From the NCBI GenBank assembly GCA_004431415.1, contig QPMI01000648.1:1-64000 (forward strand): 64,000 bases of DNA, in the 5' to 3' direction. A model generated the notes under the pieces. That model was given only the letters and a program-made list of their open reading frames with translations, made no database searches and was not told the origin of the DNA. The DNA comes from Cyanophora paradoxa CCMP329. Its lineage: Eukaryota > Plantae > Glaucophyta. The translations under genes were made by a program, and so were the position numbers. Shown piece by piece: positions 26,306 to 48,914 of this stretch (position 1 is the first letter of the stretch; every line of letters starts with the position of its first letter).

Positions 26306-28223
26306 GCCTGCGCAGCCGGAGCGGGACAGGCGAGGAGGGGCGGGACAGGCGAGGAGGGGCGGGCCCGGGGGTGCGGGGGTTTGAAAAAAGACGGGTACGA
26401 GAAAATTTCCCACCGCGTCGGCGCGCGGCTGGCTGCGGCCCGTCCATGGCGCCGCCGCTGTCGCTCAGCGTGAACAGCATGAGGTAGGCGGCTGGCGCGC
26501 CGAGCGGCGGCGCGAAATGGGCGTCGAGTTGGCGCCTCGGCAGCCGGCCTTGTCGCCGGCCATTCCGCAGGAGATTCAGGAGCGTGCGCGTCAGGGGTTA
26601 GCTTCTATGATGTCTCCGGCTCGGCGAGGAGTGCCGCGGGAGCGGTCGCGGCGACGTCGGCTGGCCGCAATGTCGGCCAGCTTTCGCGCAAAGCCCACGC
26701 CGTCAAGCGCCGCAGCGTTAGTGAACGCGCGGTAGCCGTGGCGTGGCACACTGGCGCGGCGACGTGTTCTGTCAACACGCGGACGGCGCCCGGCCCCCGC
26801 TCCCTTGCTTGGCAGCTGGGGCTCATCGGCGCTCTCTCATTTCGTTCCGCTCCTCATCTCCTCGCTGTCGAGTCGCTAGATGGCGGTTCTTTTCCACATG
26901 CAGGGAAGCTCAGGTCTTTCCGTCGACTTTTGCTTGTCAGGCGTAGTGCCTCTCCTGCCCTCCGCTATACGTGGGTCTTCCCTAGGGCGGACTTCCACGT
27001 CTGGAGGGTGTTTGCGCGCTCTGTTTGCCTTCATCGGTCTGCGTAGGGCGCTGGGCTTTTTCTGCAGGTGTATCTTTCGGCCTCTTGCCCCATTTGTAGA
27101 TATAGGACGTAGATAGAATTTTCCACCACTTAGACAGAGCACAGCACTCGACGGTCCTCAATGTTATCTAGTCGGAGAGATAAATTGGGCGATGTGAAAC
27201 TCCTAGTAGTTGTTGTTGTGTGCTAATGCAAATCCTTCCCCGGGTGCGGGGGTTTGAGGACAGAAGAGGAGCAGGGGGCGCCGGGCGGGATGCATATGGG
27301 GTACTCCGGGAACGGGGCCGGGAGTCGACGGGCTTAGGGGGCCAGGCACACAGCTCGTTTTTTTTCCTAATCGACTCGACATGCCCGTTGTGTGGGCAAG
27401 GGTAGCCGGCGATCGCGATAACTTTTCACCCGCTACGAGCCGGCTAGTGCGCCTACGTCAGCGTGTAGCCGGCAAGCTTTTAAGCTAGCGGGTAGATTGC
27501 ACTAGCTATAGCTAGCTAAAGCCAGGGAATTCCATGCAAATACCCGCGGGGAATTTTAAGGAAAACCGGATACTCGCCGTGTTGGGTCGACCGGTAAAAA
27601 AAACGAGCTGTGATGACGTCGACGTCGACGTCGACGAACCGGCCAGAATAGCCGGGGTACAGGTTTGCCCCAAGTTGCATACCCCGTTTCAATATAGGTA
27701 TATATACCCCCCGCGCCCCTAGCTGTAAATTGCGCAATAACTTGAAACTCCGACTCTCCGGGCTGGGTCGATAGGTCAGGACCCGCCGACCCGGGGGCCG
27801 GGACTCGAGCTCGGCCTCGAGCTCGGGCCCTCGACCCGTGTACCGTACGCGTATACGTAGAACTGCAGCTGCGGGAGTCTGCGACGTCGACAGGCAGCTG
27901 CAGGCTCATGACCTGGCATGCTCAAGCTTATGATTAGCTGCATGCGCAGGCCAGCTTTAGCTCAAGCACTTTCGCGATGAACGTAGCGCAGCTGCAGGGC
28001 TAGGAGCGCCAGCGGCAGAAAGCCGCAGTTCTAGTCTTCTAGCGCGCGTGATTATCGATCTCCACCACCTTTCAGGCCTACAGGTGCCGGCACGCCGCTG
28101 GCGAACTCGCCCGCATGCGCAGAGTTGAACCGCGCGCGCGCAGCACATGTACACCTAGGCCACGGCCAGGCCCGCTTGCGAACTTGCCCGCAGAATTGCG
28201 CCCCCGCGCGCGCCCGTCCGCAC

Positions 28224-31200
28224 ATGGAGACGAAGCGGATCACCGAGGATGGAGCAGTCGGGAAGGTGCGTCTTGTTCCATCTTGTCCTAGACCTTGCCC
28301 CTGCACTGGCCTTGCAGTACAAGTAATAGTGCTTCCCCGTTCGCGAACTCATTGCTGATCATGACTCCGCGCTCGCCCTGGCGCACAGAACGAGGATCGG
28401 GTGCGCCCTCGACGCGCAATTCATAATCTCTGCGCATGCTCTCCTAGCTCACTGAAACTTGAACCAGCTATGGCGGTCGATGTTTGCGGTTCAAGTCGCA
28501 CTGGTCCGCTGCCGCGGCCTGCTACGGGCGCGTGGGTTGCTTTCGATCTCATGATCATCGCTTGCTTTCGCACGCAGACCGAGATAACAACGAAGAAGTA
28601 CAACAACAGGCGAGGTGGGCCCATCGCCCCGCCGCGGGCCGGACCCGAGCTGACTCGGGTTCGGGGCCCCCGTGGCCAGAGCAAATATTGGCGGTCGTCT
28701 GGTCGATCGTGGACGGGCTCCAATTGCTCGCGCTGGTCATAGGAAGGTTCTCGGGTGCGTTTGGCTTGCAGCCGGGGCCGGCGACGTCGACCGCGGCCGG
28801 TTGCAATTGACTAATCTGTGTGCGGCCCGGCCCGGCCGGCGGCCGCAGGCTTCGACGCGGGAGTCACGCGGCCGCTGCTTCAGTGGCTGGACCTGCACAT
28901 CCTTTTCACGCAGCACAGCTGGGATGCCTTCACGGTGCGGTGTTCCGCGCCCGCGCCGCGCCGATCGCGAATGCTCCGCCTCACGCGCACGCCGCAGAAA
29001 ACGTTCTGGGTCTACTTTACGGCCACCCTCTACGCCATCCTGGCTTTCGGGTACTACGCCCTGAGGCAGTCGGTGCGGCCAGCTCGCCACCTGAGGCACC
29101 TGAGGCCCTCGCGATCGCGCGCGGTCTCGCTTGACTCAGGCTCTCGCGAACCGACGTGCAGAAGGGCAAGGGTCGTAGCGTCCAGGTCTACATGTCCATG
29201 GCTGCACGGGTACCGCTTTCTGCGCTTTCCCGAAGCCCGCTCGCGCCGGCCCTAAGGCGGACCCTTCCACCGCCGCCCCGCAGGCGCTTCTCTTCGGCCT
29301 CTTCACGCCCTACCTGAAGGCGCGTCGACGCGCCACCCCCGGCCGGCCCCGTCGGCGCCCCGGCAGCCTGCCTCTGACGCCCTCGCAGCTCTTCGCGAGC
29401 GTCTTCGCCTGCGGGCAGGTGCGCGGCCCGGCATGCGTGAGGCGCCCGCGACTCACGCGAGGCCGGCAGGACGACCTGCGGCCGGCGCTCCCCACGGACC
29501 CCGCCTCGCCGCCGCTCTTCGTCTGCCTCAACCTCCAGTGGGCGCGCCCCTCGCCTGCGCGCGGCCCAGCCCGGTGCGGTCCGAGCCGGGCGGGCGGCCG
29601 CAGACCCTGTATGCGGCGGTCTCGGGCGCCGTCCTCGGCTTCTTCATCCTCTTCTCCACCCTCTACTTCTTCCTGTTCCGCCACAATCACCTCAACTGCC
29701 CGGACTACGAGTCCCGCCCGCACGGCCGGTGCGCCTCGAGCTCGGGCCCGTCGCCGTCCTCGCGGGATCGAGAGTACCGGTGCAGGTTCCACGCGGCGTA
29801 CGCGCTGGCGCGCATCGCGATGGTGGCGGCGACGATCGTCGTACCCTCCACGGACCTCATCGCATGCCTCGTCTCGCTCGCGTGCACCGCGTACCCCCTC
29901 TACCTCCACTTCTCCTTCCTCCCGTCCTACAAGCCCATCATGAACTACGTCGTGCGCGCTGGCCATGCCCCCTCCAACCCCTCCCCCCTTTTCCAACCCC
30001 ATCTTCCCCCACCCCCCCCCCTCCGGCACCCTCCCTCACCCGCACCTCCACCTCCCCCCCCCCCCCCCCCCGCCCCCAGCCTAACCGCCGGGGCGCATGC
30101 GCAGCGGGGCGGCTTCCTGGCGTCGGCGTCGTGCCTGGCGCTGGCGTCGTGCGTGCTGGCCTCGGTGGGCGCCCCGGCGAGTCGAGCCGCGCCCTCGGCT
30201 CGGCCGTCGCCCTCGCCTTCGCCGGCTTCGCCTTCGCCTGCGGCCTCGCCCTCGTCTGGTTCCGCTACTGGCAGGCGCGCCCGCGCCCGCCCGACCCAAG
30301 CGCGCGCGCGAGCCCCTCACCCTCCGCTCTCGAAGGCGGAGAAGATGTCGCGGGTGGAGGAGGTGGACAAGCTGGACCTCAAGACCCACTTCGACGCCGA
30401 GCTCGCCGTCCGCGTCCTCCTCCTCCGCGACTCGTCCCAGCCCGCCGTCGCCGTCCGCCGCGTCCCGCGCCCCTCGCTCCCCCTTCGAACCCCCTCCTTA
30501 TCTTATCGTCCGCGGCCGCGGCCGGCGGAGCAGAAGGCGGAGGCGATGTACCGCCACGCGATCGGCGAGTTCCCGACCTCGGCCTACCTCCAGCTCCAGG
30601 CGCGCCCCCACCCGGCCCCGGCCCTCCGCATGCACGCCCCGCGCCGTCCCGCCCTTGCTCACATTCGCTGCTGCGGGCGGCATACGCATGCGCAGCTGGC
30701 GAACCTGCTGAAGCAGTACGGGAACAACCCGAACGCTGCCCACGCCGAGATCCGCATCGGGTGCGCACGGCCCCGGCCCGCGGCCGGCGCGCTGGATGGC
30801 TCTCCTGCTGAAACTGGAATCGCGGGGGCAGGTGGCGGAAGGAGCCGACCGTCGACTACCGCTACGAGCTGCACGCCACCAAGCTCTTGTGCGCCGCCCC
30901 CGTGATCGGCCTCCAGCGCGCGCGATCGAGCCTGCCGTCTCACTCTCTTCCGCCGGCGACTGCAGCTGGGAGCGGCAGGCGCAGGTGTACAGCGGGGGCC
31001 AGGGGGGGCAGGTCGCCGCCGCGGACCTCTTCAGCTCCGCCGACGCCAAGAAGCAGTACGAGAGCGCCCGCCAGAGCCGTGCGCCGTCCCCCGCCCTCCC
31101 CTCGTCCCGGCCCTCCAATCTGACTGGCCCCGGCCCCGGCCGCGCGGCGCAGACACGAAGACGCTGAAGATGACGCGGCAGTTCTGGATACAGCTGACGA

Positions 31201-34200
31201 AGAAGAACCTGCACGTCGTGGGCGCCCTCGACGACGTCCCCCGCAGGCCCGCCCCGCCCCGCCCCGCCCGGCCGCGCGCCTCTGATCTCGCCGGGCAGGC
31301 TTGCGGACATCCATCAGGTGGCTCTGGGCGCCGAGAGTGCATACGTCGCCCTGATCAAGCGTGCGCGGGGCTCGAGCTCTCGCGCCACGCGTACGGTGCC
31401 GCCGACGCCGACGCCGACCGCCCGGCGCGCAGGCTACGGCAACTCGAAGATCCTCCTCCGCTCCTACGCCTCCTTCCTCGAGCACTGCCTCGTCCGCCCC
31501 GCCCCGGCCCTCCCCTCGGCCCACCGGCAGGCTCTCTGAGAGCCCCGCGCCCGCGCCCCCGTCAGAACGACAAGCAGCGGGCACAGCTCTACTACATGAA
31601 GGCCGACGAGGTCGAGGAGTCCGAGTCCAAGACGGCCTCCCTCTCGGCCTCGCAGAGCCAGTCGCAGAGCCAGTCGGCCGGCGGCGGCGGCGGGGGCACG
31701 CAGTCGGCGTCGGAGTCGCAGTCGGCCTCGTCGGGGGCCTCGTCGTCGGCCGCCGCCAAGAAGCGGGCTGCCAACAAGGAGCTCCGGCTCCGCTCCAACG
31801 AGACCAAGGCCGTCAAGCGCCTCTTCTGGTGCGCGCGCGCGCCCGCCTGGAGCGCGCGGGCCTCCCCGCACCCGCTCACCGCCCCTCGCGGCCGCTCGCA
31901 GGGGCGTCGTTATCGGGCTCCTGTTGCTGGGCGGCCTTGCCTGCGCCATGTTCATCGCCGTCAAGGTAGCCGCCGGCCATGGGCCCGCCCCGTGTGGGGC
32001 GGGCCGGAGTACGATCAAGCCTCATCTGACGGGTACCCGGTGCTCTCCGCAGATGCTCTTCGTGGAGTACTCGCAGAACAACAGTCGGCTGCGCTTCCTC
32101 TCGTTCCAGCGGCGCCGTGTCGTCCACGTGAACACGATGATCCGACACATGCACCTCGCCGCCCGCGCCAACAGTCCGCAGCTCTCTCCCGCGTCTTGAG
32201 CCTTGCGTTCTTTTCTCTTAACATCATCCGCTCGCTACAGACACGGAGCTCTACGCACACTGGGCGAAAGAGATCGGCATTCGCGCCAAGGACTTCTCCT
32301 ACGATCACCGTGGCCTCTACTTCGGATATGACGGTGCATCCTTGCGATAGAGCGTCGGGCCGTCGATGTCCGCGCGCGCGCCGGCGCTGACGCTGGGCAT
32401 GCAGACTTGGGCATCCCGCCGAGCACGAACCCCGAGATCGTGAAGTACTGGAAGGCGCCGGACACGGAGATCGTGCTGCACTACCCGGGGCCCCCCGCCT
32501 ACGAGATCAAGGAAAAGCAGACCATCTGGGACGCCGGCAACGGGATGTGCGTGCCCGTCCCGCTCCGCACCCCAATCTCGGAGACTCTGACGCACGCCGG
32601 TCGGCCGGCGCGGCAGTATGCTCATGTGCCGGCGCATCAGCCTCATGCCGCCAGCAACCTTCCAAGGAGCGAACCTCCTCGGAATCCGAGAGCTAAGATA
32701 CGTCTTCCAGAACGCCCTCTTCGGCATCCTGGAAGCCCTCAACGTCGGCGCCGAAATCTACGAGAAAGACGTGCGCGCGCCACAGACAGAAACGTTCACT
32801 GGGACCGACTTGTAGCGATTGCAATCTGCATCGCAATTGCAAGCGGCATGCCGGCCGCGGCCCGCAACTTATTTGGCCCCGCCCGTGCGCAGGTGATCAT
32901 GACGATCGAGAAGGCGAAGTACATCCTCCTCGCCATCTGCCTCTTCTCCTGTGTCACGCTCCTCTGCTTGGCCGTCTTCGTGTTCCGGTGCGGGCTGCCT
33001 TATTTCTTAGATCAAATAAGAGATCGACGCTTAATTTCACCGAGTTCCTCTGCCGAGCCGCCTGAACCGAACGCAAATCTCGACCTAACTGCGCACCGGC
33101 GCGCAGGCCCTCGTTCGCGAAGGTGCGGGTGACGATGCGGGGCATGAGCGACATCCTGGAGGGGATCCCGCGGCCCCGTGCGCCCCCCGCCGGCCCGCCC
33201 CCGCCGGCCCGAGCGCTGACCTGCGCCCGGCCGCCGCCAGTGCTGAAGCAGATCGCGAAGCACTACAGCAAGGCGCAGAAGCGGGACCGCGAGGGCGACT
33301 CGGAGGAGGAGGAGGAGGAGGAGGGGGGCGCCAAGGGCGCCAACTCGTCGGACAGCAGCCGCGAGAGCACGAAGAGCTTGGGGTCGGACGGCGCCGAGGA
33401 CGGCGGGCGCCAGAAGTCGGCCCGGCGCTCCAAGCCGTCGCGGCGCTCCAGGGCGTCCGGCAAGGGGAAGGAGCGGGAGGAGAAGGAGGCGGCGTCGGAG
33501 TCGAGCGCGGACGAGAAGGGGAAGAAGGAGCGCAGGAAGGGGAAGCGGAAGGAGAAGGGCGGCTCCAGGAAGCGCGGGGCCGCCAAGAAGTACGAGGTCG
33601 AGAAGAGCGCCGGCGAGGCGTCGGAGACGACGGCTGCCGAGCTCGAGGCCCCCACCGAGTCGAAGCGGATGTCGATGCCGGTGGATGTCGTGCCGGCGGC
33701 CGCGGCCGCCGCCCCGGCGCCTGCTTCGGCCACGGCCGTCGAGAAGACTTCGGTGGATGGCGCCGGCAGCCGCGGCGGCAGCGCGGGGAGCCGCCGCGCC
33801 TCGAGGCCGCCGTCGGGATCGGCGGCGGCGGCGGCGGCGGGCCCCGCTGTGGTTGGCGACCTTGAGCTCGAGGCGCCGTCGTCCCCTGAACAGGGAACGC
33901 TTGGCGTTGGCGGGGCGGGCACGGCGCGGTCGAGCGAGGAGCCGGAGGCGGTGCTGGCGATCCCCGAGCTGCGCGACGCCGACGAGGCGCTCGTCCACGT
34001 CCTCCAGTCCATCCGCCCCGCTAGCGCTGACTCGGACAAGCTGAAGGCGAATTCGAAGACGGGCGTCGCGAGTGCGCCCGCCAGCGCCTCGAGCGGCCAC
34101 GGCGCCGGTAGCTGGACCCCCGATGAGGAGGATCAGCGCAAGGAGCGCCGCGACCGCAGCGCCAGCATCCAGCTGACGCAGAAGCCGCGGACGACACCGC

Positions 34201-36415
34201 TGGTGCGCCAGGGCAGCAACGGTGGCGCCACGGGCGGCATCTTGCGCAAGGCCGCAGCAGAGGCGGCAGCGTCTGCGGATGAGGACAAGCCCAAGGCCCC
34301 TGCGCATCACAAGCGGCAAGCCAGCGGCAAGGAGGCGCAGGAGGGCGCGGAGAAGAGCAGCAGCAGCGGGGAAGATGCCAAGAAGGACAAGAAGAAGAAG
34401 AAGGACGCGGAGCAGAAGCAGAAAGCGCGCCGGGGCGACGAGGGCGAGAAGCAGGGCGCAGACATCCTCACCAAGTGCGCTCCGAGCGCTCCGGGTGCTT
34501 CTCCTCCGAGTGCTCCTCACCAAACACGCCGCGCGCTCTCCCCGGCGCAGGCTCACGTACAAGTACACTGCCGCCTTCTTCGTCATCGTGCGCGGCCCCG
34601 CGCGCGGCCCTTTGAATCCACTTCTCCGCCTCGGCTCGAGCTGCTCCACCATCCAAGAATATTTTAATTGCTGATCGGTCCCCTCATGCAGGCCGGCATC
34701 TTCATCGTTAACTTCATGGTCTGTTTCATCATCCTCGACGCCGGCAAGAATTACGCGTACGAGATCAACCTCGCCGGCCGGGTGCGCCGTGAGCTGCTGC
34801 TGCAGATCTAGATCTAGAGCGCGCGGGCCTCGAGCCGAGCGCGCTGACCCGGCCGGGGCCTGCAGCGCCGCTCGATCGCCCGCGAAGTCCCCTTCTACGC
34901 TCGCGAGCTCTACATGCAAGGTGCGGCGGGCACCGCCCGTCTACCCTCTGTCTTAAATACTGCATAAAAAATATCCGAGGCTCCATTCTCGCACATACTA
35001 TATAGAAAACATATTGTTCGATTTCAAGCCCATGCTTCAACAGCGGAGGCAGCGGTTTTCTCTCGGGATCCTCACTCTGGCCGCGCGCCCGCGCGCAGGC
35101 GTCATCTTCCTGCCCCGCGCGCAGGTCTTCGAGCGCCTCATGAAGAAGATGGCCCTGTGCGTGGCCACGGCTCTTTCAGGACGGGAAAGTGCACTCACCG
35201 ACGGCGCTGGGCCGCCCGCGCGCAGCCTGAAGGAGATCCACCAGGCGCTGAAGTTCGGAGACCCGGAGCTGAACGTGCTGGGCGCCAACGGGCGCAACAA
35301 GCAGCTCGACGCCATCATGTACGAGCCCGGCTGCCTTCGCCTCAACGTGCGCGCGGGCACATTTGCAGATGCGATCTTTTTCGGGAGGCCCGCTCTGACG
35401 CAAAGCATGCGCAGGCGGCCAAGTGCGTCGACAATCGCGTTGCAGACATGCAGCTCGTCGGTGCGCGCTCGCGGCTGCAGCTGGCGCGCGGCTGGCGTCT
35501 CACCAGCCACGGAAGTCTGACCCGCGGGCATCGATATCGGCGCAGACAACGGGCTGGACGCCCTGGTGCTGGGCTTTGGGGACTTGCTCATTGAGCTGCT
35601 TTTGGAGACGGCCCCCGACCTGCTGCTCACCGGCAAGGAGGATAAGAAGTACATCAAGGTGGGCGCCGTACAATCGCTCCAATTTTCTCATTCTTGATCG
35701 AACTATGTGTACTAATATAATTCGGCGCAGCCGAACACGACACCGAATTCGGCCACGCTGGATCTCATTATGGATGCGCGTCTGCTTCTCTTATTATTTT
35801 CAAAGCACCCAATCGAGCGCGACGTGTCCCGCCGTTGGGCTGATCGGACGGGCCGGCAGATCGACGACGGGGACCTGGACGACGGGCTGAACAGGGCGGC
35901 CGCCGCCTTCGTCGCCGAGTCCCTCACCTCCATGGGCGTCATCGAGACGATGGAGGCGCGTGCACGCTCTCGCATACGCGCTCTTACTGGTTTCAGAGCG
36001 CCGTCCTTGCATTTTGAGATGGTTCGGTAACGTTTGGCGAGCAGGCGCTGATCCTCACCTTCGTCATTTTGTTCTTGGCGGGTTTATACTGTGAGCGCTG
36101 GTCCCCCGCACGCCCTATTATACTTCCCGGTACCGTTTGTTTAACGTGGCGTGCGCCTTCACCCGTCGCGAGCGCGCAGTGTACCTCTTCGCGCCCATGC
36201 TGGCGCGCCTGAGAGAGGAGACGGGCCGGGCCGGCCAGATCCTCCGCATGATCCCCAAGGACGTCGTCCTCAAGGCGCGCCCGGCCTCGCCCGCCCTCGC
36301 CCTCCGCTCGCGAGCGGCCCCGAGCGCGTGTCTGATGGGGCGCGTCCCGCTCGCGCAGTGCGTGCACCTGCACCACTACTTCGTGGGCATCGGCAAGGAG
36401 GAGGAGGACGAGTAG
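28224..36415 (+). CDS. TmcB/TmcC-like polytopic membrane protein without PAS domains, copy A (many exons)
   Basis: N-terminal multi-TM region (FLPSYKPIMNYV), TPR-like AEAMYRHAIGEFPTSAYL and YGNSKILLRSYASFLEH, two TM-flanked ectodomains and C-terminal LRMIPKDV. An apparent 1-bp deletion at ~30168 may be a sequence error. Confidence 0.75.
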
Positions 36416-37052
36416 ACCGGCGGCGCCCGCGCTCGTACGCGTCGACGTCGCTCGAATTCGGTTCCCTCGATCGGCTGCGCTCCCGGCCTCCGAGGCGCCG
36501 GCCCATCGTGCGGCCGGTTGCGACGCCATCGACATCGCTCGACGGCTCGTGCTTTAGCTCTAAATCGAAATGTTTATTAGGCCGCACATGGCAGTTTTCA
36601 GAATATTTATACGGTAATGAATAAGTAGTAGGTTTTCCGGATCCTTCTGTCTCAAATTGCGATATCGATTAATATTGAGCTGCAACTCGGACTGAACAGG
36701 GACACTGTCATTGTCTGTCAGTCACACTTCCCAGCTTTCTGTCTGGTGAAATAATTCATTTTGCGTATACTATCATAACTATAGTATCGCAGTATACTAT
36801 GCGATGAAGCGTTAACGTTGTGATCATGAGTATGCAGACAGCTGCAGTAGGAGACTACCAAAATTATATAAACGCTTCGGAGTTTGTATACTAACTCAGC
36901 ACATATCTGCAGCTGAGTCATGATCGATATCGATGTAGTGAATGTTAACTACAATGATAAGAGCCGTCTCGGTATGTAGATATCGATATCGATGTGCGTG
37001 TTCATGTTGTCGCCGCCGCCGCCGCGTTCAAAATTTGCCGAGAGATATCGAT

Positions 37053-37690
37053 TTATTTTTTTTGGTGAATTACCGGCCACAGTCTCTAGACACCAGCACT
37101 GCGGGGGCTGCCCAGGGGGCATAAAGACAAAAAAGCAAAATAACTAAGACAAGAGCACGAAGAAAGATAAGACAAAGAGCCAAAATCGACAATAATAAAG
37201 AAAAGACACAGAGCTCGAGACAGATCGAGAAGAGACGATAAAGCGAGCAGATCGAGGGACAAAGGAGGACTGACACGAAGAAGAGCCAGAGCTAGAGATA
37301 CCATCAAGATCGGAAGGAATTACAACACTAAGAAGCGGAGGACAAAATTGAGAAAGATAAATAACAGGAAGCAGACAAGTAAGAGGAACAACAAGACGAC
37401 GTGGAGGCGGAGGCGAAGCAGGACGATGCGAAAGGGCAGAGCTACGGCACGAGGTCGACGAGGACACAGGAGGCGGAGCAGGCGGATCAAGAGCAGGCAA
37501 AAGGACAGTCAAAGGAATCACTAAAGCCGGCCGGGGTCGAGGCGGGCAGTCGAACTGCAAACGACGGCGAACAACAGGTCGAGCACGAGGACTATAGCTA
37601 GTATTGAAACTAACTCTAGCATCAACACTACGATCAGAATCCGAACTGGACCGAACTCGTCGAACTCGTTCGCAAGCTGAGATTCGAGAG
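37053..37690 (-). mobile_element. Poly(A)-tailed retroposon fragment, family R2
   Basis: T-run at the left end. The ~50-nt 3' tail is shared with the SINE at 39368, and the body has a strong purine strand skew. The TSD and right boundary are uncertain. Confidence 0.55.
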
Positions 37691-37766
37691 GATATCGATG
37701 GTGCTGCTATCGATATCGATGGATTTGGAATCCTCGCAATCCTAGAATTCGAATCTCCTCCGCTTG

Positions 37767-37798
<32 letters not shown>

Positions 37799-38904
37799 GG
37801 GCCCGTCAACCAAACCAATTAAGGACCGACTCCATGTAAGGACCGATTGATATTTGTTTTTGCGACCGTCGACGTCGACGCATCGACTTTTCAAGCTCAT
37901 GATCACCTACTTACAGATCCCGGATCATGATCACCCATATGTGCATGGCCAGCTGCAGCCTGCAGGCTTATAATTACTGCTTAAGCTTTCGGTGGATTTT
38001 AATAATTTCCGGAATGATCGGGCGCCGGCCCCGCCGCATGCGCAGTTCAACGGTTGCCGCTCCCGCGGCGGTCAAGTTTATTGCCAAGTTGCCCCTCTTG
38101 CTTCCCGTTCCCTCGCTTTGAATTCAGCCAAAAGTTTTCTATGAGGCCGTTTTCGAGGTCCAGTATGCAACACCAGAAAAAAGGGCGCTTATTCGCGTTC
38201 CGATTGGCTCGGTGGACCGGTCAGCTCTCGCCGAGTCGACTTTCGAGCGTCGGACTCGAGCTCGCGAGAGCACTCTCGACTCGGGAAAAGTGGTTTTCGA
38301 TGGGAAAACCAATCTCTCACTCCTCTTGCTATAGATCTGGGCTCTCCGGGCCTCTAGATCTCCCTCGCCGAGTCGAGCTCGCGCGGCGCTGCACTGTCAC
38401 GCGGCGGTTTTGCATGGCAACCACTTCTCCCTACTAAGAGTCCCTAGCTGTCTCCTCTACAGTCTCTACTAAGCTAAATTTCCTCTTGCTCGCACTACGC
38501 TGTTAACGTTCTGCCCGGCACCGCGAAACCGCTTGCACCGCTGCCTCAGGGCCTGCGCCGCTAGCGCTGATCGCAGCCGAGCATGCGTGGCCGTCCAGAC
38601 TGTAGTCTTTTGCTGCGCTCAGCGCTAGCAAGCCGGCGACATCGCGTGCGCCGCAGAACCGCGTGCGCCGGCCGAGCACGCCTGCTGGGCCGGGCGCTCT
38701 TGTTGCGCTCGGCACCCGGCCAGCAGACTAGTTCGCGTGCTGCGCACGACGTGCCGCTTGTCCGCTTAGTCTGCGCCCCGCGTGCGCCCCGCGTTGCGCC
38801 GCGCGCCTGCGTCCCCGCCGCCTGCCACCCGGCCAGCAGTCCAGCTCGGTTGCTGGGCACGGCGCGCCGCTGCACACCGCTTGCCGTTCGTTACGGTTCT
38901 GCCG

Positions 38905-38998
38905 CGCGCATGTGCGTGCCACTATAGCTAGGACTCTTTCACTAGATCCCGGTTCCCCCCTTGCACGCCCGGCGCGAAAATCGCGGCCGGGCCACTAG
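38905..38998 (+). mobile_element. Canonical Helitron-like 3' terminus, family 2, second copy
   Basis: CCCGGCGCG-AAAAT-CGCGGCCGGG hairpin followed by CTAG|T at 38995-38998. Homologous to 9551-9637. Confidence 0.6.
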
Positions 38999-39367
38999 TA
39001 TTTGACCTGCAGCTGGAATTCGAATCCGGATTGGAGTGGCCATGATCATGATTGGAGTTGAATTCGAAATTCACACAAATTAAAGCTTTACATGCGTATG
39101 CACACCACAAATGCAACGTCTATTACGCTAACAAACAACTGCAAGCGCTAGCTATATCCCATGATCATAATATTCAGCGGGTCTTAGTCCTTGGCTCTAA
39201 ATTGTATACTTTCTTGTATAATGTAAATACAGCTATCGATTACGTATATATACGCAAGCAAACAACTGCAAGCGTAAGCGCTAATATGTATCGATATCTC
39301 ATGATCATAATATTCAGCGAGAGGTATCGTAATCCTTGGCTCTAATTATATATACATTGTATACGTA

Positions 39368-39582
39368 TTTTTTTTTGGTGAATTACCGGCCACAGCCTCT
39401 AGTCTACTCCAGCACTGCGGGGGCGTATACAGGCAAGGTGGGACATGATCGATCGGAATTATGTGGAGCGGGCGGGATTCGAAGGCGTGATTCTCATCGC
39501 AGGGCGATTCGAACACGGAAGGCATGATATAGACAGCGTGTATGATAACCACACCGCTATGAGCGGGGGTATAAACATACCC
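39368..39582 (-). mobile_element. Putative tRNA-derived SINE
   Basis: 11-bp TSD TTGTATACGTA (39357-39367 / 39583-39593). The minus strand has an A-box-like TAGCGGTGTGG, a B-box-like GTTCGAATC and a poly(A) tail. Confidence 0.7.
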
Positions 39583-39802
39583 TTGTATACGTACATTGTA
39601 TAAACACTATTTATATGTAAGCACTGCGCTAAAACAAATCCTTGCATGCGACTGCTGTTGAACCGTGGGCGAGCGACGGCGTCGGATCCTAAGCACCATC
39701 CCTCGAGCGACGGCGTCGGCTGCACGCCAGGCCGGCGCCTTGGGAGGCCGGGCGACGGGACGATCGCGAGGGAAGCGAGCGACGGCCGCCGGCGCAGCCG
39801 GC

Positions 39803-42800
39803 CTACTCGTCCTCCTCCTTGCCGATGCCCACGAAGTAGTGGTGCAGGTGCACGCACTGCGCGGGCGAGGCGCGCCGCATCAGACACGCGCTCGAGGCCG
39901 CTCGCGAGCGGAGGGCGAGGGCGGGCGAGGCCGGGCGCGCCTTGAGGACGACGTCCTTGGGGATCATGTGGAGGATCTGGCCGGCCCGGCCCGTCTCCTC
40001 TCTCAGGCGCGCCAGCATGGGCGCGAAGAGGTACACTGCGCGCTCGCGACGGGTGAAGGCGCACGCCACGTTAAACAAACGGTACCGGGAAGTATAATAG
40101 GGCGTGCGGGGGACCAGCGCTCACAGTATAAACCCGCCAAGAACAAAATGACGAAGGTGAGGATCAGCGCCTGCTCGCCAAACGTTACCGAACCATCTCA
40201 AAATGCAAGAACGGCGCTCTGAAACCAGTAAGAGCGCGTGTGCGAGAGCGTGCACGCGCCTCCATCGTCTCGATGACGCCCATGGAGGTGAGGGACTCGG
40301 CGACGAAGGCGGCGGCCGCGCGGTTCAGCCCGTCGTCCAGGTCCCCGTCGTCGATCTGCCGGCCGTCCGATCAACCCAACGGTGGGACACCTTGCAGCCC
40401 GATCAAGGCGGACGCGCCTCCATAATGAGGTCCAGCTTGTTTGATTTTATGTCGAAGTTGTTTTTCTGCGCCCAATTAGTACACGTGGACGTATTCGTAT
40501 ACGCAGTTCGATCAAGGCGATTGTAAGGCGCCCACCTTGATGTACTTTGCCTCCTCCTTGCCGGTGATCAGCAGGTCGGGGGTCGTCTCCTGCATGATCT
40601 CGACGACGAGGTCCGTCACGCCCATCACGAGGGCGTCCAGCCCGTTCGCTGCGCAGATGCTCGCGCGTGAGGTCGAACCCGGTAGTCAAGCAAGAGAGCC
40701 ACACGCACTGACGAGCTGCATGTCTTCAACGCGATTGTCGACGCACTTGGCCGCCTGCACATGCTTTACGTCAGAGCGGGCCGCAAGAAAAGATCGCATC
40801 TGCAAATGTGCCCGCGCGCACGTCGAGGCGAAGGCAGCCGGGGTCGTACATGATGGAGTCGAGCTGCTTGTTGCGCCCGTTGGCGCCCAGCACGTTCAGC
40901 TCCGGGTTTCCGAACTTCAGCGCCTGGTGGATCTCTTTCAGGCTGCGCGCGCGCGGGCCAGCGTCGTCTGTGAGTGAACTTTCCAGTCCTAGAAGAAACT
41001 ATCCGCCGTCGCGAGCTTCGAGCTCGGGCGCGGCTACGCACAGTGCCGCCTTTCTGACGAGGCGCTCGAAGACCTCGGCGCGGGGCAGGAAGATGGCGCC
41101 TGCGGGCTGGAGTGAGGAAGATCTGGCCATGGAGACGAAACCTTCGGGGGCCAGGCCGGCGCCGGCGCGTCGCGGGTCGCGGGCTGTGCCGCGGCACATG
41201 GACTAGACTTCGAATAGCACGTCGCGTACGTAGATGGAGATTTTTGAGGCGTTGTTTAAGACAAGGGACACAAGGACGGCGCCGGCCGCACCTTGGAAGT
41301 AGAGCTCGCGAGCGTAGAACGCCACTTCGCGGGCGATTGAGCGGCGCTGCAGGCCCCGGCCGCGTCAGCAATGTTTGCAGGCTCGGCTCAAGCTATAGGT
41401 CTGCTATGCTACAGCTGTTCACGACGCACCCGGCCGGAGAGGTTGATCTCGTACGCGTAATTCTTGCCGGCGTCGAGGATAATGAAGCAGACAACGAAGT
41501 TGACGATGAAAATGCCGGCCTGCATGAAGGGACCGATCAGCAAACGAAGTTCTCATGGATGGTGGAGCAGCTCGAGCCGAGGCGGAAAAATGGATTCAAG
41601 GGGCCGGGCGCGGGGCCGCGCACGATGACAAAGAAGGCGGCAGTGTACTTGTACGTGAGCCTGCGCCGGGGAGAGCGCGCAGCGCGTTTGGTGAGGAGCA
41701 CTCGGAGGATGGTTACGAGCGCTCGGAGCGCACTTGGTGAGGATGTCTGCGCCCTGCTTCTCGCCCTCGTCGCCCCGGCGCGCTTTCTGCTTCTGCTCCG
41801 CGTCCTTCTTCTTCTTCTTGTCCTTCTTGGCCTCCTCCCCGCAGCTGCTGCTCTTCTCCGCGCCCTCCTGCGCCTCCTTGCCGCCGGCGTGCCGCTTGTG
41901 ATGCGCAGGGGCCTTGGGCTTGTCCTCATCCGCAGACGCTGCCGCCTCTGCTGCGGCCTTGCGCAGGATGCCGCCCGTGGCGCCACCGTTGCTGCCCTGG
42001 CGCACTAGCGGCGTCGGCCGCGGCTTATGCGTCAGCTGGATGCTGGCGCTGCGGTCGCGGCGCTCCTTGCGCTGATCCTCCTCATCGGGGGTCCAGCTAC
42101 CGGCGCCGTGGCCGCTCGACGCGCTAGCGGGCGCACTCGCGACGCCCGTCTTCGAATTCGCCTTCAGCTTGTCCGTGTACGAGTCAGCGCTAGCGGGGCG
42201 GATGGACTGGAGGATGCGGACGAGCGCCTCGTCGGCGTCGCCCAGCTCGGGGATCGCCAACACCGCCTCGGGCTCCTCGCTCGACCGCGCCGTGTCCGCC
42301 CCGCCAACGCCAAGCGTTCCCTGTTCAGGGGACGACGGCGCCTCGAGCTCAAGGTCGCCAACCACAGCGGGACCCGCCGCCGCCGCCGCCGCCGATCCCG
42401 ACGGCGGCCTCGAGGCGCGGCGGCTCCCCGCGCTCCCGCCGCGGCTGCCGGCGCCATCCGCCGAACTCTTCTCGATGGACGAGGCCGAAACTCGCGCCGC
42501 AGCTGGAGCTGGGGCGGCGGCCGTAGCCGCGGGCACGACATCCACCGACATCGACATCCGCTTCGACTCGGCTGGGCCCTCGAGCTCGGCAGCCGTCGTC
42601 TCCGACGCCTCGCCGGCGCTCTTCTCGACCTCGTACTTCTTGGCGGCCCCGCGCTTCCTGGAGCCGCCCTTCTCCTTCCGCTTCCCCTTCCTGCGCTCCT
42701 TCTTCTCCTTCTCGTCCGCGCTCGACTCCGACGCCGCCTCCTTCTCCTCCCGCTCCTTCCCCTTGCCGGACGCCCTGGAGCGCCGCGACGGCTTGGAGCG

Positions 42801-45800
42801 CCGGGCCGACTTCTGGCGCCCGCCGTCCTCGGCGCCGTCCGACCCCAAGCTCTTCGTGCTCTCGCGGCTGCTGTCCGACGAGTTGGCGCCCTTGGCGCCC
42901 CCCTCCTCCTCCTCCTCCTCCTCCGAGTCGCCCTCGCGGTCCCGCTTCTGCGCCTTGCTGTAGTGCTTCGCGATCTGCTTCAGCACTGGCGGCGGCCGGG
43001 CGCAGGTCAGCGCTCGGGCCGGCGGGGGCGGGCCGGCGGGGGGCGCACGGGGCCGCGGGATCCCCTCCAGGATGTCGCTCATGCCCCGCATCGTGACACG
43101 CACCTTCGCGAACGAGGGCCTGCGCGCCGGTGCGCAGTTAGGTCGAGATTTGCGTTCGATTCAGGCGGCTCGGCAGAGGAACTCGGTGAAATTAAGCGTC
43201 GATCTCTTATTTGATCTAAGAAATAAGGCAGCCCGCACCGGAACACGAAGACGGCCAAGCAGAGGAGCGTGGCGCAGGAGAAGAGGCAGATGCCGAGGAG
43301 GATGTACTTCGCCTTCTCGATCGTCATGATCACCTGCGCGCGGCGCAAGGGACCAATTAGGTGCTGGCCGGGCCGGGCCCGCGGCCGGCCCGCCCCCTCC
43401 CCCGCGCACGTCGTCCTCGTAGATCCCGGCGCCGACGTTGAGGGCGTCGAGGATGCCGAAGACGGCGTTCTGGAAGACGTATCTGGGGGAGGTTCGCGCT
43501 TTGCGGCATAAGGAAGGCGTAAGGAAGGCCTACTTGAGCTCGCGGATGCCGGCGAGGTTGATGCCCTGGAAGACCTCCATCGGCATGAGGCTCACGCGCC
43601 GGCACATGATCATGCTGGAGGGCCGGCCGGCCGACCGGCGTGCGTCAGAGTCTCCGAGATTGGGGTGCGGAGCGGGACGGGCACGCACATCCCGTTGCCG
43701 GCGTCCCAGATGGTCTGCTTTTCCGTGATTTCGTAGATTGGGGGCCCAGGATAGTGGAGCACGATCTCGGTATTCTTCGTCTTCCAATAGTTCACGATCT
43801 CGGGGTTCGTGCTCGCCGGGATCCCCAAGTCTGCACGCCCCGCATCAGCCCCCGCGCACGGATGTCGACGGCCTCAAGTTCAGTCGCAAGGATGCACCGT
43901 CATATCCGAAGTAGAGGCCACGGTGGTCGAACGAGAAGTCCTTGGCGCGAATGCCCACCTCGCTCGCCCAGTGCGCGAACATCTCCGTGTCTGTAGCGAG
44001 CGGGCTGATGTCAAGAGAAAAATGGGCGCGGCGCGATTCAAAAGCGGGTAAAAAGCTGCGGACTGTTGGCGAGGGCGGCGAGGTGCATGTGGCGGATCAG
44101 GGTGTTCACGTGGACGACACGGCGCCGCTGGAACGAGAGGAAGCGCAGCCGACTGTTGTTCTGCGAGTACTCCACGAAGAGCATCTGCGGAGAGCGCCGG
44201 GTACCCGTCAGATGAGGCTGGATCGTACTCCGGCCCGCCCCACACGGGGCGGGCCCATGGCCGGCGGCTACCTTGACGGCGATGAACATTGCGCAGGCAA
44301 GGCCGCCCAGCAACAGCAGCCCGACGACGATGCCCCTGCGAGCGGCCGCGAGGGGCGGTGAGCGGGTGCGGGGAGGCCCGCGCGCTCCAGGCGGGCGCGC
44401 GCGCGCACCAGAAGAGGCGCTTGACGGCCTTGGTCTCGTTGGAGCGGAGCCGGAGCTCCTTGTTGGCCGCCCGCTTCTTCGCCGCCGCCGACGACGAGGC
44501 CCCCGACGAGGCCGACTGCGACTCCGACGCCGACTGCGTGCCCCCGCCGCCGCCGCCGGCCGACTGGCTCTGCGACTGGCTCTGCGAGGCCGAGAGGGAG
44601 GCCGTCTTGGACTCGGACTCCTCGACCTCGTCGGCCTTCATGTAGTAGAGCTGTGCCCGCTGCTTGTCGTTCTGACGGGGGCGCGGGCGCGGGGCTCTCA
44701 GAGAGCCTGCCGGTGGGCCGAGGGGAGGGCCGGGGCGGGGCGGACGAGGCAGTGCTCGAGGAAGGAGGCGTAGGAGCGGAGGAGGATCTTCGAGTTGCCG
44801 TAGCCTGCGCGCCGGGCGGTCGGCGTCGGCGTCGGCGGCACCGTACGCGTGGCGCGAGAGCTCGAGCCCCGCGCACGCTTGATCAGGGCGACGTATGCAC
44901 TCTCGGCGCCCAGAGCCACCTGATGGATGTCCGCAAGCCTGCCCGGCGAGATCAGAGGCGCGCGGCCGGGCGGGGCGGGGCGGGGCGGGCCTGCGGGGGA
45001 CGTCGTCGAGGGCGCCCACGACGTGCAGGTTCTTCTTCGTCAGCTGTATCCAGAACTGCCGCGTCATCTTCAGCGTCTTCGTGTCTGCGCCGCGCGGCCG
45101 GGGCCGGGGCCAGTCAGATTGGACGGGCCGGGGCGAGCGGAGGGCGGGGGTCGGCGCACGGCTCTGGCGGGCGCTCTCGTACTGCTTCTTGGCGTCGGCG
45201 GAGCTGAAGAGGTCCGCGGCGGCGACCTGCCCCCCCTGGCCCCCGCTGTACACCTGCGCCTGCCGCTCCCAGCTGCAGTCGCCGGCGGAAGAGAGTGAGA
45301 CGGCAGGCTCGATCGCGCGCGCTGGAGGCCGATCACGGGGGCGGCGCACAAGAGCTTGGTGGCGTGCAGCTCGTAGCGGTAGTCGACGGTCGGCTCCTTC
45401 CGCCACCTGCCCCCGCGGTTCCAGTTTCAGCAGGAGAGCCATCCAGCGCGCCGGCCGCGGGCCGGGGCCGTGCGCACCCGATGCGGATCTCGGCGTGGGC
45501 AGCGTTCGGGTTGTTCCCGTACTGCTTCAGCAGGTTCGCCAGCTGCGCATGCGTATGCCGCCCGCAGCAGCGAATGTGAGCAAGGGCGGGACGGCGCGGG
45601 GCGTGCATGCGGAGGGCCGGGGCCGGGTGGGGGCGCGCCTGGAGCTGGAGGTAGGCGAGGTCGGGAACTCGCCGATCGCGTGGCGGTACATCGCCTCCGC
45701 CTTCTGCTCCGCCGGCCGCGGCCGCGGACGATAAGATAAGGAGGGGGTTCGAAGGGGGAGCGAGGGGCGCGGGACGCGGCGGACGGCGACGGCGGGCTGG

Positions 45801-48006
45801 GACGAGTCGCGGAGGAGGAGGACGCGGACGGCGAGCTCGGCGTCGAAGTGGGTCTTGAGGTCCAGCTTGTCCACCTCCTCCACCCGCGACATCTTCTCCG
45901 CCTTCGAGAGCGGAGGGTGAGGGGCTCGCGCGCGCGCTTGGGTCGGGCGGGCGCGGGCGCGCCTGCCAGTAGCGGAACCAGACGAGGGCGAGGCCGCAGG
46001 CGAAGGCGAAGCCGGCGAAGGCGAGGGCGACGGCCGAGCCGAGGGCGCGGCTCGACTCGCCGGGGCGCCCCACCGAGGCCAGCACGCACGACGCCAGCGC
46101 CAGGCACGACGCCGACGCCAGGAAGCCGCCCCGCTGCGCATGCGCCCCGGCGGTTAGGCTGGGGGCGGGGGGGGGGGGGGGGGGGGGGGGGAGGTGGAGG
46201 TGCGGGTGAGGGAGGTGCCGGAGGGGGGGGGGGGGGGGGGGGCATGGCCAGCACGCACGACGTAGTTCATGATGGGCTTGTAGGACGGGAGGAAGGAGAA
46301 GTGGAGGTAGAGGGGGAACGCGGTGCACGCGAGCGAGACGAGGCACGCGATGAGGTCCGTGGAGGGTACGACGATCGTCGCCGCCACCATCGCGATGCGC
46401 GCCAGCGCGTACGCCGCGTGGAACCTGCACCGGCACTCTCGATCCCGCGAGGACGGCAACGGGCCCGGCCCGAGCTCGAGGCGCACCGGCCGTGCGGGCG
46501 GGACTCGTAGTCCGGGCAGCTGACGTGGTTGTGGCGGAACAGGAAGAAGTAGAGGGTGGAGAAGAGGATGAAGAAGCCCAGGACGGCGCCCGAGATCGCC
46601 GCGTACAGGGTCTGCGCCCGCCCGCCCCGCTCGGACAGGACCGAACTGGGCCGCGCGCAGGCAAAGGGACGCCGGGCGCGCCCACTGGAGGTTGAGGCAG
46701 ACGAAGAGCGGCGGCGAGGCGGGGTCCGTGGGGAGCGCCGGCCGCAGGTCGTCCTGCCGGCCTCGCGTGAGTCGCGGGCGCCTCACGCATGCCGGGCCGC
46801 GCACCTGCCCGCAGGCGAAGACGCTCGCGAAGAGCTGCGAGGGCGTCAGAGGCAGGCTGCCGGGGCGCCGACGGGGCCGGCCGGGGGTGGCGCGTCGACG
46901 CGCCTTCAGGTAGGGCGTGAAGAGGCCGAAGAGAAGCGCCTGCGGGGCGGCGGTGGAAGGGTCCGCCTTAGGGCCGGCGCGAGCGGGCTTCGGGAAAGCG
47001 CAGAAAGCGGTACCCGTGCAGCCATGGACATGTAGACCTGGACGCTACGACCCTTGCCCTTCTGCGCGTCGGTTCGCGAGAGCCCGAGTCAAGCGAGACC
47101 GCGCGCGATCGCGAGGGCCTCCGGTGACTCAGGTGGCGAGCTGGCCGCACCGACTGCCTCAGGGCGTAGTACCCGAAAGCCAGGATGGCGTAGAGGGTGG
47201 CCGTAAAGTAGACCCAGAACGTTTTCTGCGGCGTGCGCGTGAGGCGGAGCATTCGCGATCGGCGCGGCGCGGGCGCGGAACACCGCACCGTGAAGGCATC
47301 CCAGCTGTGCTGCGTGAAAAGGATGTGCAGGTCCAGCCACTGAAGCAGCGGCCGCGTGACTCCCGCGTCGAAGCCTGCGGCCGCCGGCCGGGCCGGGCCG
47401 CACACAGATTAGTCAATTGCAACCGGCCGCGGTCGACGTCGCCGGCCCCGGCTGCAAGCCAAACGCACCCGAGAACCTTCCTATGACCAGCGCGAGCAAT
47501 TGGAGCCCGTCCACGATCGACCAGACGACCGCCAATATTTGCTCTGGCCACGGGGGCCCCGAACCCGAGTCAGCTCGGGTCCGGCCCGCGGCGGGGCGAT
47601 GGGCCCACCTCGCCTGTTGTTGTACTTCTTCGTTGTTATCTCGGTCTGCGTGCGAAAGCAAGCGATGATCATGAGATCGAAAGCAACCCACGCGCGCGTA
47701 GCAGGCCGCGGCAGCGGACCAGTGCGACTTGAACCGCAAACATCGACCGCCATAGCTGGTTCAAGTTTCAGTGAGCTAGGAGAGCATGCGCAGAGATTAT
47801 AAATTGCGCGTCGAGGGCGCACCCGATCCTCATTCTGTGCGCCAGCGCGGGTTATGATCAGCTATGGGTTCGCAAACGGAGAAGCACAAGACTATAGCTA
47901 GTACTGCAGGGCCAGTGCAGGCGCGAGGCCTAGGAAAAGATAGTCAATATGGTACAAGACGCACCTTGCCGACTGCTCCATCCTCGGCTATCCGCTTCGT
48001 CTCCAT
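39803..48006 (-). CDS. TmcB/TmcC-like polytopic membrane protein without PAS domains, copy B (inverted paralogue of copy A)
   Basis: Reverse-complement paralogue from METKRIAEDGAVGK to GIGKEEDE*. An apparent 1-bp deletion at ~45655 may be a sequence error. Confidence 0.75.
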
Positions 48007-48914
48007 GTGCGGACCCTATCCGCTTCCTCCGGCTCTATCCTCTCTTGGCGGGCGCGCGGGTGCCGAGGGGCCCGGCTCTTCTGCGGCCAAGTGTGGCAGC
48101 GGCACCTGCACCCGTCCTGTAGGTGTGAGGAGTTGCAGCATATGTACGCGATCTTCGGAAAGCGTACCGGTACTGCCGCTCCTGTGCCAGGAAGCACGTC
48201 GTCAGTGCTGCTTGCGGCAGCGTACGCGTCCAGCCAGCAGCCCGCTGCCAACTGCAACTGCAATCTCAAGGGTGTGCAATCTTCTAAGAGACTAGTTGCT
48301 CGTCGGGCCGAGTCGGCCCGCGGCGGAGTCTGTTTCGGGATCCCACGCGCTCCGGTCCGGAACTTTGAAACTTGATATGCCAAACCAGCTGCAGCCTGCA
48401 GCACTGCCGCACTGCGGCAGTCTCTCAGAGTCTAGATCTGGCAGCGGATAACGTAGTACCGGTATCCCGCCGAAATAATAATCCCGGATATCGATCGAAA
48501 TCCAGCTTAATTGTGCCGATCGAAGCTTGCGAACGGTGGGGAACTTACTAAGTTAAGCAGCGGTAAGCTTAAGCTTGGCACGGCGGCCCGTCGCCGGGCC
48601 GTCGGCGGGGGGAAGAGCTTCGAATTCAGGGGGTATAAAGTCTTAAACGACAACAAGAACTGGCCAAGCCGCCTAGGCCTGCCATTTCGAATTCCAGGAC
48701 ATTTCCGAAATTTTCAAGCGAAGCCTCTTTCTCAGACCCGGTCACCGACGACCCTAATTCCGTTCAAGCGAAGCCTCTTTCTCAGACCCGGTCACCGACG
48801 ACCCTAATTCCGCTCGGATTCGAACCCGAACTTTTTCATCTCCCCTGTAAATAATTTCCCTGTCCAGCCTCCTCATGAAAAATTAATAATTTTTCCTCGA
48901 CACGGACGTGACGC

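Follow-up and report, generated by a model that had tools for sequence, protein, structure and literature searches.

An inverted pair of predicted TmcB-family membrane protein genes in Cyanophora paradoxa forms a mosaic of near-identical and diverged segments

The sequence analysed here (hereafter, the window) comprises 64,000 nucleotides of contig QPMI01000648.1 from the glaucophyte alga Cyanophora paradoxa CCMP329 and harbors a large inverted repeat, the arms of which are two convergent (tail-to-tail) genes, tig00021522_g22099 and g22100, consecutive in the annotation. An inverted-repeat search yielded 18 collinear pairs linking 28374-36443 to 47849-39772; weak similarity extends the outer ends of the arms to 28216 and 48014, and the inner ends reach ~36470 and ~39740. 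The arms thus span ~8.2 kb each around a ~3.3-kb spacer (36471..39739; Table 1). Their global alignment consists of 8274 columns, with 7436 identical bases, 423 mismatches and 415 indel bases, and each arm amounts to approximately a single gene, from the start codon to a few tens of bases beyond the stop. When a stop-free stretch of the left arm was compared with 1.84 billion representative proteins, only 4 matches were obtained, all from Cyanophora paradoxa, the best of them being the protein of the left gene (P0001).

The left gene consists of 43 exons plus a 12-nt mini-exon (28389-28400), that is, 44 altogether, with the ATG at 28224 and the TAG stop codon at 36413-36415. Contigs from two RNA-like public sequencing runs skip introns and so back several junctions of this model: they support the exons at 32893-32986, 33241-34474, 35545-35656 and 35860-35953 and extend the 3' untranslated region (UTR) to ~37050. 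In a 1582-nt RNA-like contig, 32893-32986 and 33241-34474 are connected by 72 unplaced letters, consistent with the 71-nt exon 30, and the variants along exons 29-31 are those of the right arm. In addition, left-arm exon 38, where the arms are only 78% alike, is matched by an RNA-like contig with 0 differences. Given that these contigs carry both left-arm exon 38 and right-arm variants, both genes appear to be transcribed. The share of GC-AG introns in the left model, 8 of 43, mostly with GCGCGC donors, is unusually high; the GC donors follow exons 8, 10, 14, 16, 20, 39, 40 and 42 (for example, at 29320, 29542 and 35956), and the donor at 35955/35956 is located within 2 nt of the point where an RNA-like contig leaves the genome.

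The right gene shares the exon plan of the left one, with local differences. One G is missing from right-arm exon 16 (window position 45656, opposite left-arm 30580-30581), changing CTCGGCC to CTCGCC within an otherwise perfect tract and shifting the frame in the TPR region. The annotated right protein bypasses this frameshift via a later donor, with 22 unrelated residues replacing the family-wide 'SAYLQLQ'; the deletion may be genuine or may stem from an error in the consensus. In exon 28 of the right arm, a 51-nt GT..AG insert with an in-frame stop (43533-43483, minus strand) interrupts what is, in the left arm, a continuous exon (32617-32770). The insert would represent an intron-like presence/absence difference between two young paralogues.

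Table 1. Coordinates of the inverted repeat, its genes and the segments discussed in the text (positions in the window)
Feature	Position	Strand	Evidence or remarks
Left arm of the inverted repeat	28216..36470	+	Reverse-complement alignment to 48014-39740; similarity fades beyond the ends
Right arm of the inverted repeat	39740..48014	-	Inverted-repeat search and global alignment of the arms
Spacer	36471..39739	.	3' UTRs of both genes and a very high-copy repeat at ~37055-39402
Left gene, tig00021522_g22099.t1 (P0001, 1560 amino acids)	28224..36415	+	Every exon maps exactly, with GT/GC..AG junctions
Right gene, tig00021522_g22100.t1 (P0005, 1600 amino acids)	39803..48006	-	Exact exon mapping; same exon plan as the left gene
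TPR region, exons 15-23	30336..31828	+	Pfam TPR_TmcB at residues 437-551
Exon 24, predicted helix 619-637 opening loop 1	31902..31965	+	Kyte-Doolittle peak 2.74
Exon 29, predicted helix 819-837 closing loop 1	32893..32987	+	Peak 2.92; RNA-like contig
Exons 32-33, predicted helix 1284-1302 opening loop 2	34551..34781	+	Peak 2.91
Exons 41-42, predicted helix 1496-1514 closing loop 2 and start of the putative cytoplasmic tail	36045..36274	+	Peak 2.53
Diverged block 1, left arm; exons 26-28 and introns 25-28	32150..32892	+	Partner 44087-43334; encodes residues 679-809, membrane-distal loop 1
Diverged block 2, left arm; exons 33/34-35 and 38-39 with introns	34750..35859	+	Partner ~41460-40356; most of loop 2

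The left-arm protein, P0001, matches the Pfam family TPR_TmcB (PF25474) with an E value of 2.3e-20 and a score of 73.2 bits, against a cut-off of 27; residues 437-551 align with positions 14-124 of the 125 in the profile. The same family is precomputed for the right-arm protein, P0005, and for three further family members (P0006, P0007 and P0008), with a fourth, P0004, falling below it. For the rest of P0001, the Pfam search returned nothing beyond TPR_TmcB. As judged from their sequences, both arm proteins are large multi-pass membrane proteins of the TmcB family. Hydropathy analysis of P0001 on the Kyte-Doolittle scale detects peaks at residues 45-63, 139-157, 189-207, 226-267 and 296-314 before the TPR region and at 619-637, 819-837, 1284-1302 and 1496-1514 after it. 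The resulting plan starts with a helix cluster (45-314), followed by the TPR region (~320-560), helix 619-637, loop 1 (638-818; 180 residues), helix 819-837, a linker rich in K, E and S (~840-1275; 435 residues), helix 1284-1302, loop 2 (1303-1495; 193 residues), helix 1496-1514 and a 45-residue tail. A cyclase or another output domain downstream of the last helix was considered and rejected: the gene ends at 36415 without such a domain. This is the first domain plan for a Cyanophora branch of the barely studied TmcB family, and it suggests that the two loops are the most variable parts of that family.

The helices are flanked by K/R-rich segments on the sides of the TPR region, the linker and the tail and, for 819-837 and 1496-1514, by acidic segments on the loop side. 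Because these flanks obey the positive-inside rule and both a TPR region and a charged linker are typically cytoplasmic, the loops are probably non-cytoplasmic, that is, extracellular or lumenal. Potential markers of this topology are the conserved Cys1391 and Cys1399 and the NxS/T sites at residues 652 and 678. Searches of the loops against Pfam (E up to 10) and a PDB profile search produced nothing credible, and an Atlas search found no named relative, the look-alikes being unnamed eukaryotic proteins. AlphaFold models of both transmembrane-loop-transmembrane modules, built from 5-sequence alignments, are mostly helical and unreliable, with predicted local distance difference test (pLDDT) scores of 40 and 51. 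A reading of this stretch made from the DNA letters only (hereafter, the sequence-only reading) had called these loops sensor domains; with no match in Pfam or PDB and such models, this label is a guess. The closing helix and the motif that follows it look alike in the two modules ('MRGMSDILEGIPRPLLK' vs 'GRAGQILRMIPKDVVLK'; P0001 802-866 vs 1472-1539; window ~32750-33250 and ~35880-36270). Comparison of the modules with hhalign gave an E value of 0.015, with a probability of only 3%, over the closing helix and the 'G..IL..IP' motif, and the modules may have originated by an ancient internal duplication.

TmcB (tiny macrocysts protein B) of Dictyostelium resembles the Cyanophora proteins in being a large multi-pass protein with a TPR domain located between helix clusters; the two transmembrane-loop-transmembrane modules and the 435-residue charged linker of the Cyanophora proteins have no match in Pfam or PDB. 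A role of the Dictyostelium tmcB gene in macrocyst formation and cAMP signalling has been reported (PMC12750705). Outside the TPR region, word searches, which are limited by length and shared words, retrieved relatives from Cyanophora only, and in the literature we found no paper on TmcB in algae.

The similarity between the two arms is distributed unevenly along their length. The region 28374-32150 is mostly 99-100% identical (96-100% per 100 columns), except for small patches of 90% identity (29.47-29.76 kb) and an indel of 40 nt at about 29.96 kb; identity is also 99-100% at 32890-33675 and 98-100% at 35860-36370, and is intermediate, 95-98%, at 33676-34650 (about 33.5-34.7 kb). Perfect arm-to-arm tracts, introns included, reach 637, 568, 414, 389, 388, 266, 240 and 238 bp. 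Between these regions lie two diverged blocks, with identity per 100 columns of 28-89% in block 1 (32.15-32.89 kb) and 46-87% in block 2 (34.75-35.86 kb), the latter enclosing an island of 93-96% identity at 35186-35400. Exons and introns follow the same mosaic. Identity is 95-100%, and mostly 100%, across exons 2-23 with their introns, and 94-100% in exons 40-43. In the diverged blocks, identity drops to 82-88% in exons 26-28 (introns, 52-92%), 83-92% in exons 33-35 (introns, 55-68%) and 65-78% in exons 38-39 (introns, 52-65%), with exons 36-37, in the island, at 96%. The sequence-only reading had described this architecture correctly: the inverted-repeat search and the global alignment recover its ~8.2-kb arms and ~3.3-kb spacer, its near-identical tracts running through introns (save that 33676-34650 reaches only 95-98%) and its two blocks differing in both introns and residues, at 32150-32890 and 34750-35860, and the six peptides it quoted were all located where it had placed them.

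The contrast between the blocks and the rest of the arms far exceeds that expected from randomly scattered differences. The longest identical run is 637 bp, whereas in 2000 shuffles its mean is 110 and none (0/2000) exceeds 212, and the mismatch rate is 1.2% in introns 2-24 vs 10-16% in the introns of the blocks (Fisher p 1e-11 to 1e-25). Silent-site divergence (dS; this and the ratio of non-synonymous to silent divergence, dN/dS, are Nei-Gojobori estimates from locally joined coding sequences) amounts to 0.35 for block 1 and spans 0.19-0.40 across block 2, with 0.40 reached in exons 38-39; it drops to 0.06 for the linker, to 0.02-0.03 for the N-terminal and TPR parts and to 0.00 for the tail. 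The blocks are therefore more than 10 times older at neutral sites than the remainder of the arms; with silent sites differing as 0.35-0.40 vs 0.00-0.06, the contrast is one of age and does not reflect protein constraint alone. Furthermore, the existence of zones of intermediate identity (33.5-34.7 kb and 35.19-35.40 kb) shows that overwriting occurred at several times. Such a pattern is what non-allelic gene conversion between duplicated genes classically leaves behind.

Arm-to-arm gene conversion, already suggested in the sequence-only reading, is the best explanation of this pattern, given that neither introns nor silent sites differ within the tracts and that the blocks show a more than 10-fold higher silent divergence. 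Specifically, we favor, with a probability of about 0.68, an old inverted duplication followed by patchy conversion, from which the two blocks escaped mechanically. Under this scenario, the duplication would have produced two convergent copies of a gene for a TmcB-family multi-pass membrane protein, and breaks in one copy would have been repeatedly repaired from the other, that is, by intrachromosomal non-allelic gene conversion, in tracts of a few hundred bases to a few kilobases. Approximately three quarters of each arm would thereby have been reset, at several times, to 95-100% identity across exons and introns. Two stretches, which encode most of both transmembrane-bracketed loops, would have escaped and kept their original divergence. 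Most likely, this escape was mechanical and self-reinforcing, whereby mismatches, large intron indels and the intron present in one copy would block the start or the passage of a conversion tract. The introns of the blocks differ between the arms by indels of 20-72 nt; given these indels and the 51-nt insert in exon 28, heterology by itself would be expected to stop conversion tracts in the blocks. The loops, under weaker constraint, would have been the first to reach conversion-resistant divergence, and both copies would have stayed under purifying selection.

Composition also differs along the arms. The GC content of introns is 78% in the most homogenised zone (28504-32052) vs 60-66% in the blocks (32174-32892 and 34782-35859), and that of third codon positions (GC3) is 0.93 vs 0.83-0.85, which may be a footprint of GC-biased gene conversion; in two other converted zones, however, intron GC is only 67-68%. 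The X-revcomp(X)-X signature of six-base insertions was not found among the indels between the arms. In the literature, we found no paper on conversion in the nuclear genome of Cyanophora.

The position of the blocks relative to the predicted topology bears on whether selection had a part in keeping them distinct. Loops 1 and 2, which account for 24% of the codons, contain 60 of the 91 residue differences between the arms (odds ratio 7.1, p 2e-18). The fit between the blocks and the loops is good but not exact: residues 639-678 (the first 40 of loop 1), 1356-1410 and 1464-1496 (the last 33 of loop 2) are homogenised, and helix 1284-1302 is diverged at silent sites. The claim of the sequence-only reading that both blocks lie between transmembrane helices and are extracellular thus stands in the sense that they fall mainly in loops 638-818 and 1303-1495, which are probably non-cytoplasmic, and fails at these boundaries. 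The comparison of silent and amino acid changes with topology, which that reading had recommended, is similarly split: residue differences concentrate in the loops, but dN/dS is not convincingly above 1. Block 1 has a ratio of 0.34; in block 2, the ratio is 0.48 for exons 33-35 and 0.81 for exons 38-39. The sole value above 1, namely 1.47, rests on 6 changes in a converted island.

An adaptive explanation of the same mosaic would have selection remove any conversion that touches ligand-facing loops, such that two receptor specificities are maintained on one concertedly evolving scaffold. The location of both blocks in the two loops flanked by transmembrane helices would be expected in this case, as would the faster evolution of the loops across the family (the maximum likelihood distance between the left arm and P0006 is 0.37 in block 1 vs 0.20 in the conserved parts), the long block 2 branch of the left copy, the dN/dS of 0.81 in exons 38-39, which is the highest of any sizeable segment, and the apparent transcription of both copies. 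However, block 1 has a dN/dS of 0.34, and none of the diverged parts of block 2 reaches 1; silent sites and introns diverged as much as residues; three segments of the loops were homogenised nevertheless; no ligand-binding fold was recognised; and the relative-rate count is not significant. We therefore regard this explanation as doubtful. Its functional corollary, a pair of proteins with a shared membrane and TPR scaffold and two sets of outward-facing loops kept apart by selection, with loop 2 of the left copy in the midst of a functional shift, is likewise unlikely; if true, it would give a TmcB-type receptor two specificities. The sequence-only reading had gone further in this direction, viewing the blocks as protected from conversion and the locus as a receptor-diversification system. 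With dN/dS at 0.34 and 0.48-0.81 and intron indels of 20-70 nt that hinder conversion, nothing supports a dedicated system for diversifying receptors, and the locus represents a known kind of gene-pair evolution.

Another potential source of the diverged blocks is the rest of the gene family. Word searches of annotated proteins with the whole protein, the C-terminal module and a family profile identified only four further members that contain these regions, namely the full-length P0006, P0007 and P0004 and a protein that ends downstream of loop 1, P0008; with two N-terminal fragments, P0002 and P0003, the further members number six. By name, the six belong to six different contigs, so that the g22099/g22100 pair is the only adjacent one; g15641, g5756 and g16855 are among the annotated paralogues. 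In the flanks of the inverted repeat, no other family member was found; the sole match, at 55.6 kb, is weak and of low complexity. Identity between the arms is 82% in block 1, where P0008 and P0006 match them at 73-78%; in a 53-residue part of block 2 (block 2c), it is 60%, compared with 53-67% for the other members. In maximum likelihood trees of protein sequences with ultrafast bootstrap, in which the arms were placed among 5-6 paralogues, the two arms form sister branches throughout, with support of 88-92% for block 1 and of 100% for both block 2 and the conserved parts. In addition, a 2-residue insertion in block 1 is common to both arms and missing in all other members.

The sequence-only reading had offered, as one option, that the blocks were swapped in from other paralogues, which in the fuller form of this scenario implies a recent duplication, with the blocks pasted in later from family members by ectopic conversion or exon shuffling. 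Potential donors do exist in the form of the six members on other contigs, and the right-arm protein shares slightly more residues of block 2c with P0007 (36/54) than with the left-arm protein (32/53). Nevertheless, the per-domain trees group the arms together inside the blocks as well as outside them, the block 1 insertion is specific to the arms, the identity of any member to either arm peaks at 78% in block 1 and 67% in block 2c, and the three kinds of searches gave no further members, leaving no donor for the blocks among the retrieved proteins. This scenario is accordingly very unlikely. The blocks are instead remnants of the original duplication, whose age, as estimated from block 1, is about half that of the split from P0008. 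A further candidate was asymmetric evolution of the left copy: in block 2, its maximum likelihood branch is ~7 times as long as that of the right copy (0.39 vs 0.06), but the counts of derived residues in the left vs the right copy, 13 vs 7 in block 2 and 22 vs 15 overall, are not significant, and this candidate was rejected.

Near-identical arms around a repeat could also be produced during assembly, either as a fold-back chimera or by cross-polishing of diverged copies. The spacer, with its very high-copy repeat, is not spanned by contigs, and the 1-nt deletion within the perfect tract of right-arm exon 16 could be a consensus error. We compared the Logan contigs of four public runs over 31600-37500 and found that 37 of the 38 variant letters listed are equal to the right-arm base, that is, the same differences between the arms recur in independent short-read contigs. 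Two DNA runs, each from a different study, contain exact matches to the diverged blocks of the left arm. In the perfect tracts, including 33132-33519 and 36006-36245, no second variant is listed. The contigs break at tract borders, as expected when two copies share a tract, and the ~10% difference between the arms follows a pattern that respects the reading frame. The junction between the left arm and the spacer is covered by a 705-nt contig. Thus, with both arm versions present in contigs of independent runs, the collapse in assembly or polishing that the sequence-only reading had named among its refuting findings appears unlikely, and we give an artefact hardly any credence.

Several observations nonetheless weigh against patchy conversion with mechanical escape, or against parts of its basis. 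The correspondence between the blocks and the loops is better than chance easily gives, which leaves room for selection, and, in block 2, the ~7-fold longer branch of the left copy is a hint of a shift in function or of relaxation, neither of which would be predicted if the process were purely mechanical. The right copy, with the deletion in exon 16 and the stop-bearing insert in exon 28, may be not fully functional. The inverted adjacency of the arms rests on the assembly, with no read or contig spanning the spacer, and the consecutive gene numbers may derive from the same assembly. Finally, identity of the 100% tracts in each individual read is beyond what Logan contigs can prove.

The closest parallels to the inferred process are found in palindromes and in mosaics of duplicated genes. 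The ampliconic palindromes of the human Y chromosome are inverted duplicates that are kept alike by arm-to-arm gene conversion. The Cyanophora locus shares with them the inverted arms, the unique spacer, near-100% identity that extends into non-coding sequence, the inverted orientation that avoids deletion and the retention of the pair; in contrast, its arms are short (8 kb), each carries a single gene, homogenisation is patchy, with two old blocks at 50-90% identity, and the host is a glaucophyte alga. The inverted RHD/RHCE pair, the opsin genes and the MHC/KIR genes belong to receptor or antigen gene duplicates that form conversion mosaics while retaining distinct segments, and in several such mosaics, diversifying or balancing selection has been demonstrated. 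As in these cases, the shared backbone of the Cyanophora pair is homogenised and the segments predicted to face outward differ; unlike them, the diverged blocks show dN/dS below 1. The locus as it stands reveals no new mechanism. It provides a clean, fully annotated case of patchy concerted evolution in a glaucophyte, a lineage in which the dynamics of the nuclear genome has been little studied. Conversion between neighbouring paralogues, if general in Cyanophora, can mislead the dating of gene trees and the counting of paralogues in its genome.

The window as a whole is GC-rich, at 53-76% in 2-kb windows. In DNA runs, the word depth of the spacer from 36919 on is 100-1000 times that of its flanks, and the high-copy repeat in the spacer is probably a transposable element. 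It is opened by a 34-nt motif (eight T, then GGTGAATTACCGGCCACAG...) that occurs at 37056 and 39369; the spacer also contains a purine-rich stretch (37.1-37.5 kb) and, at 37778, a C(21) run.

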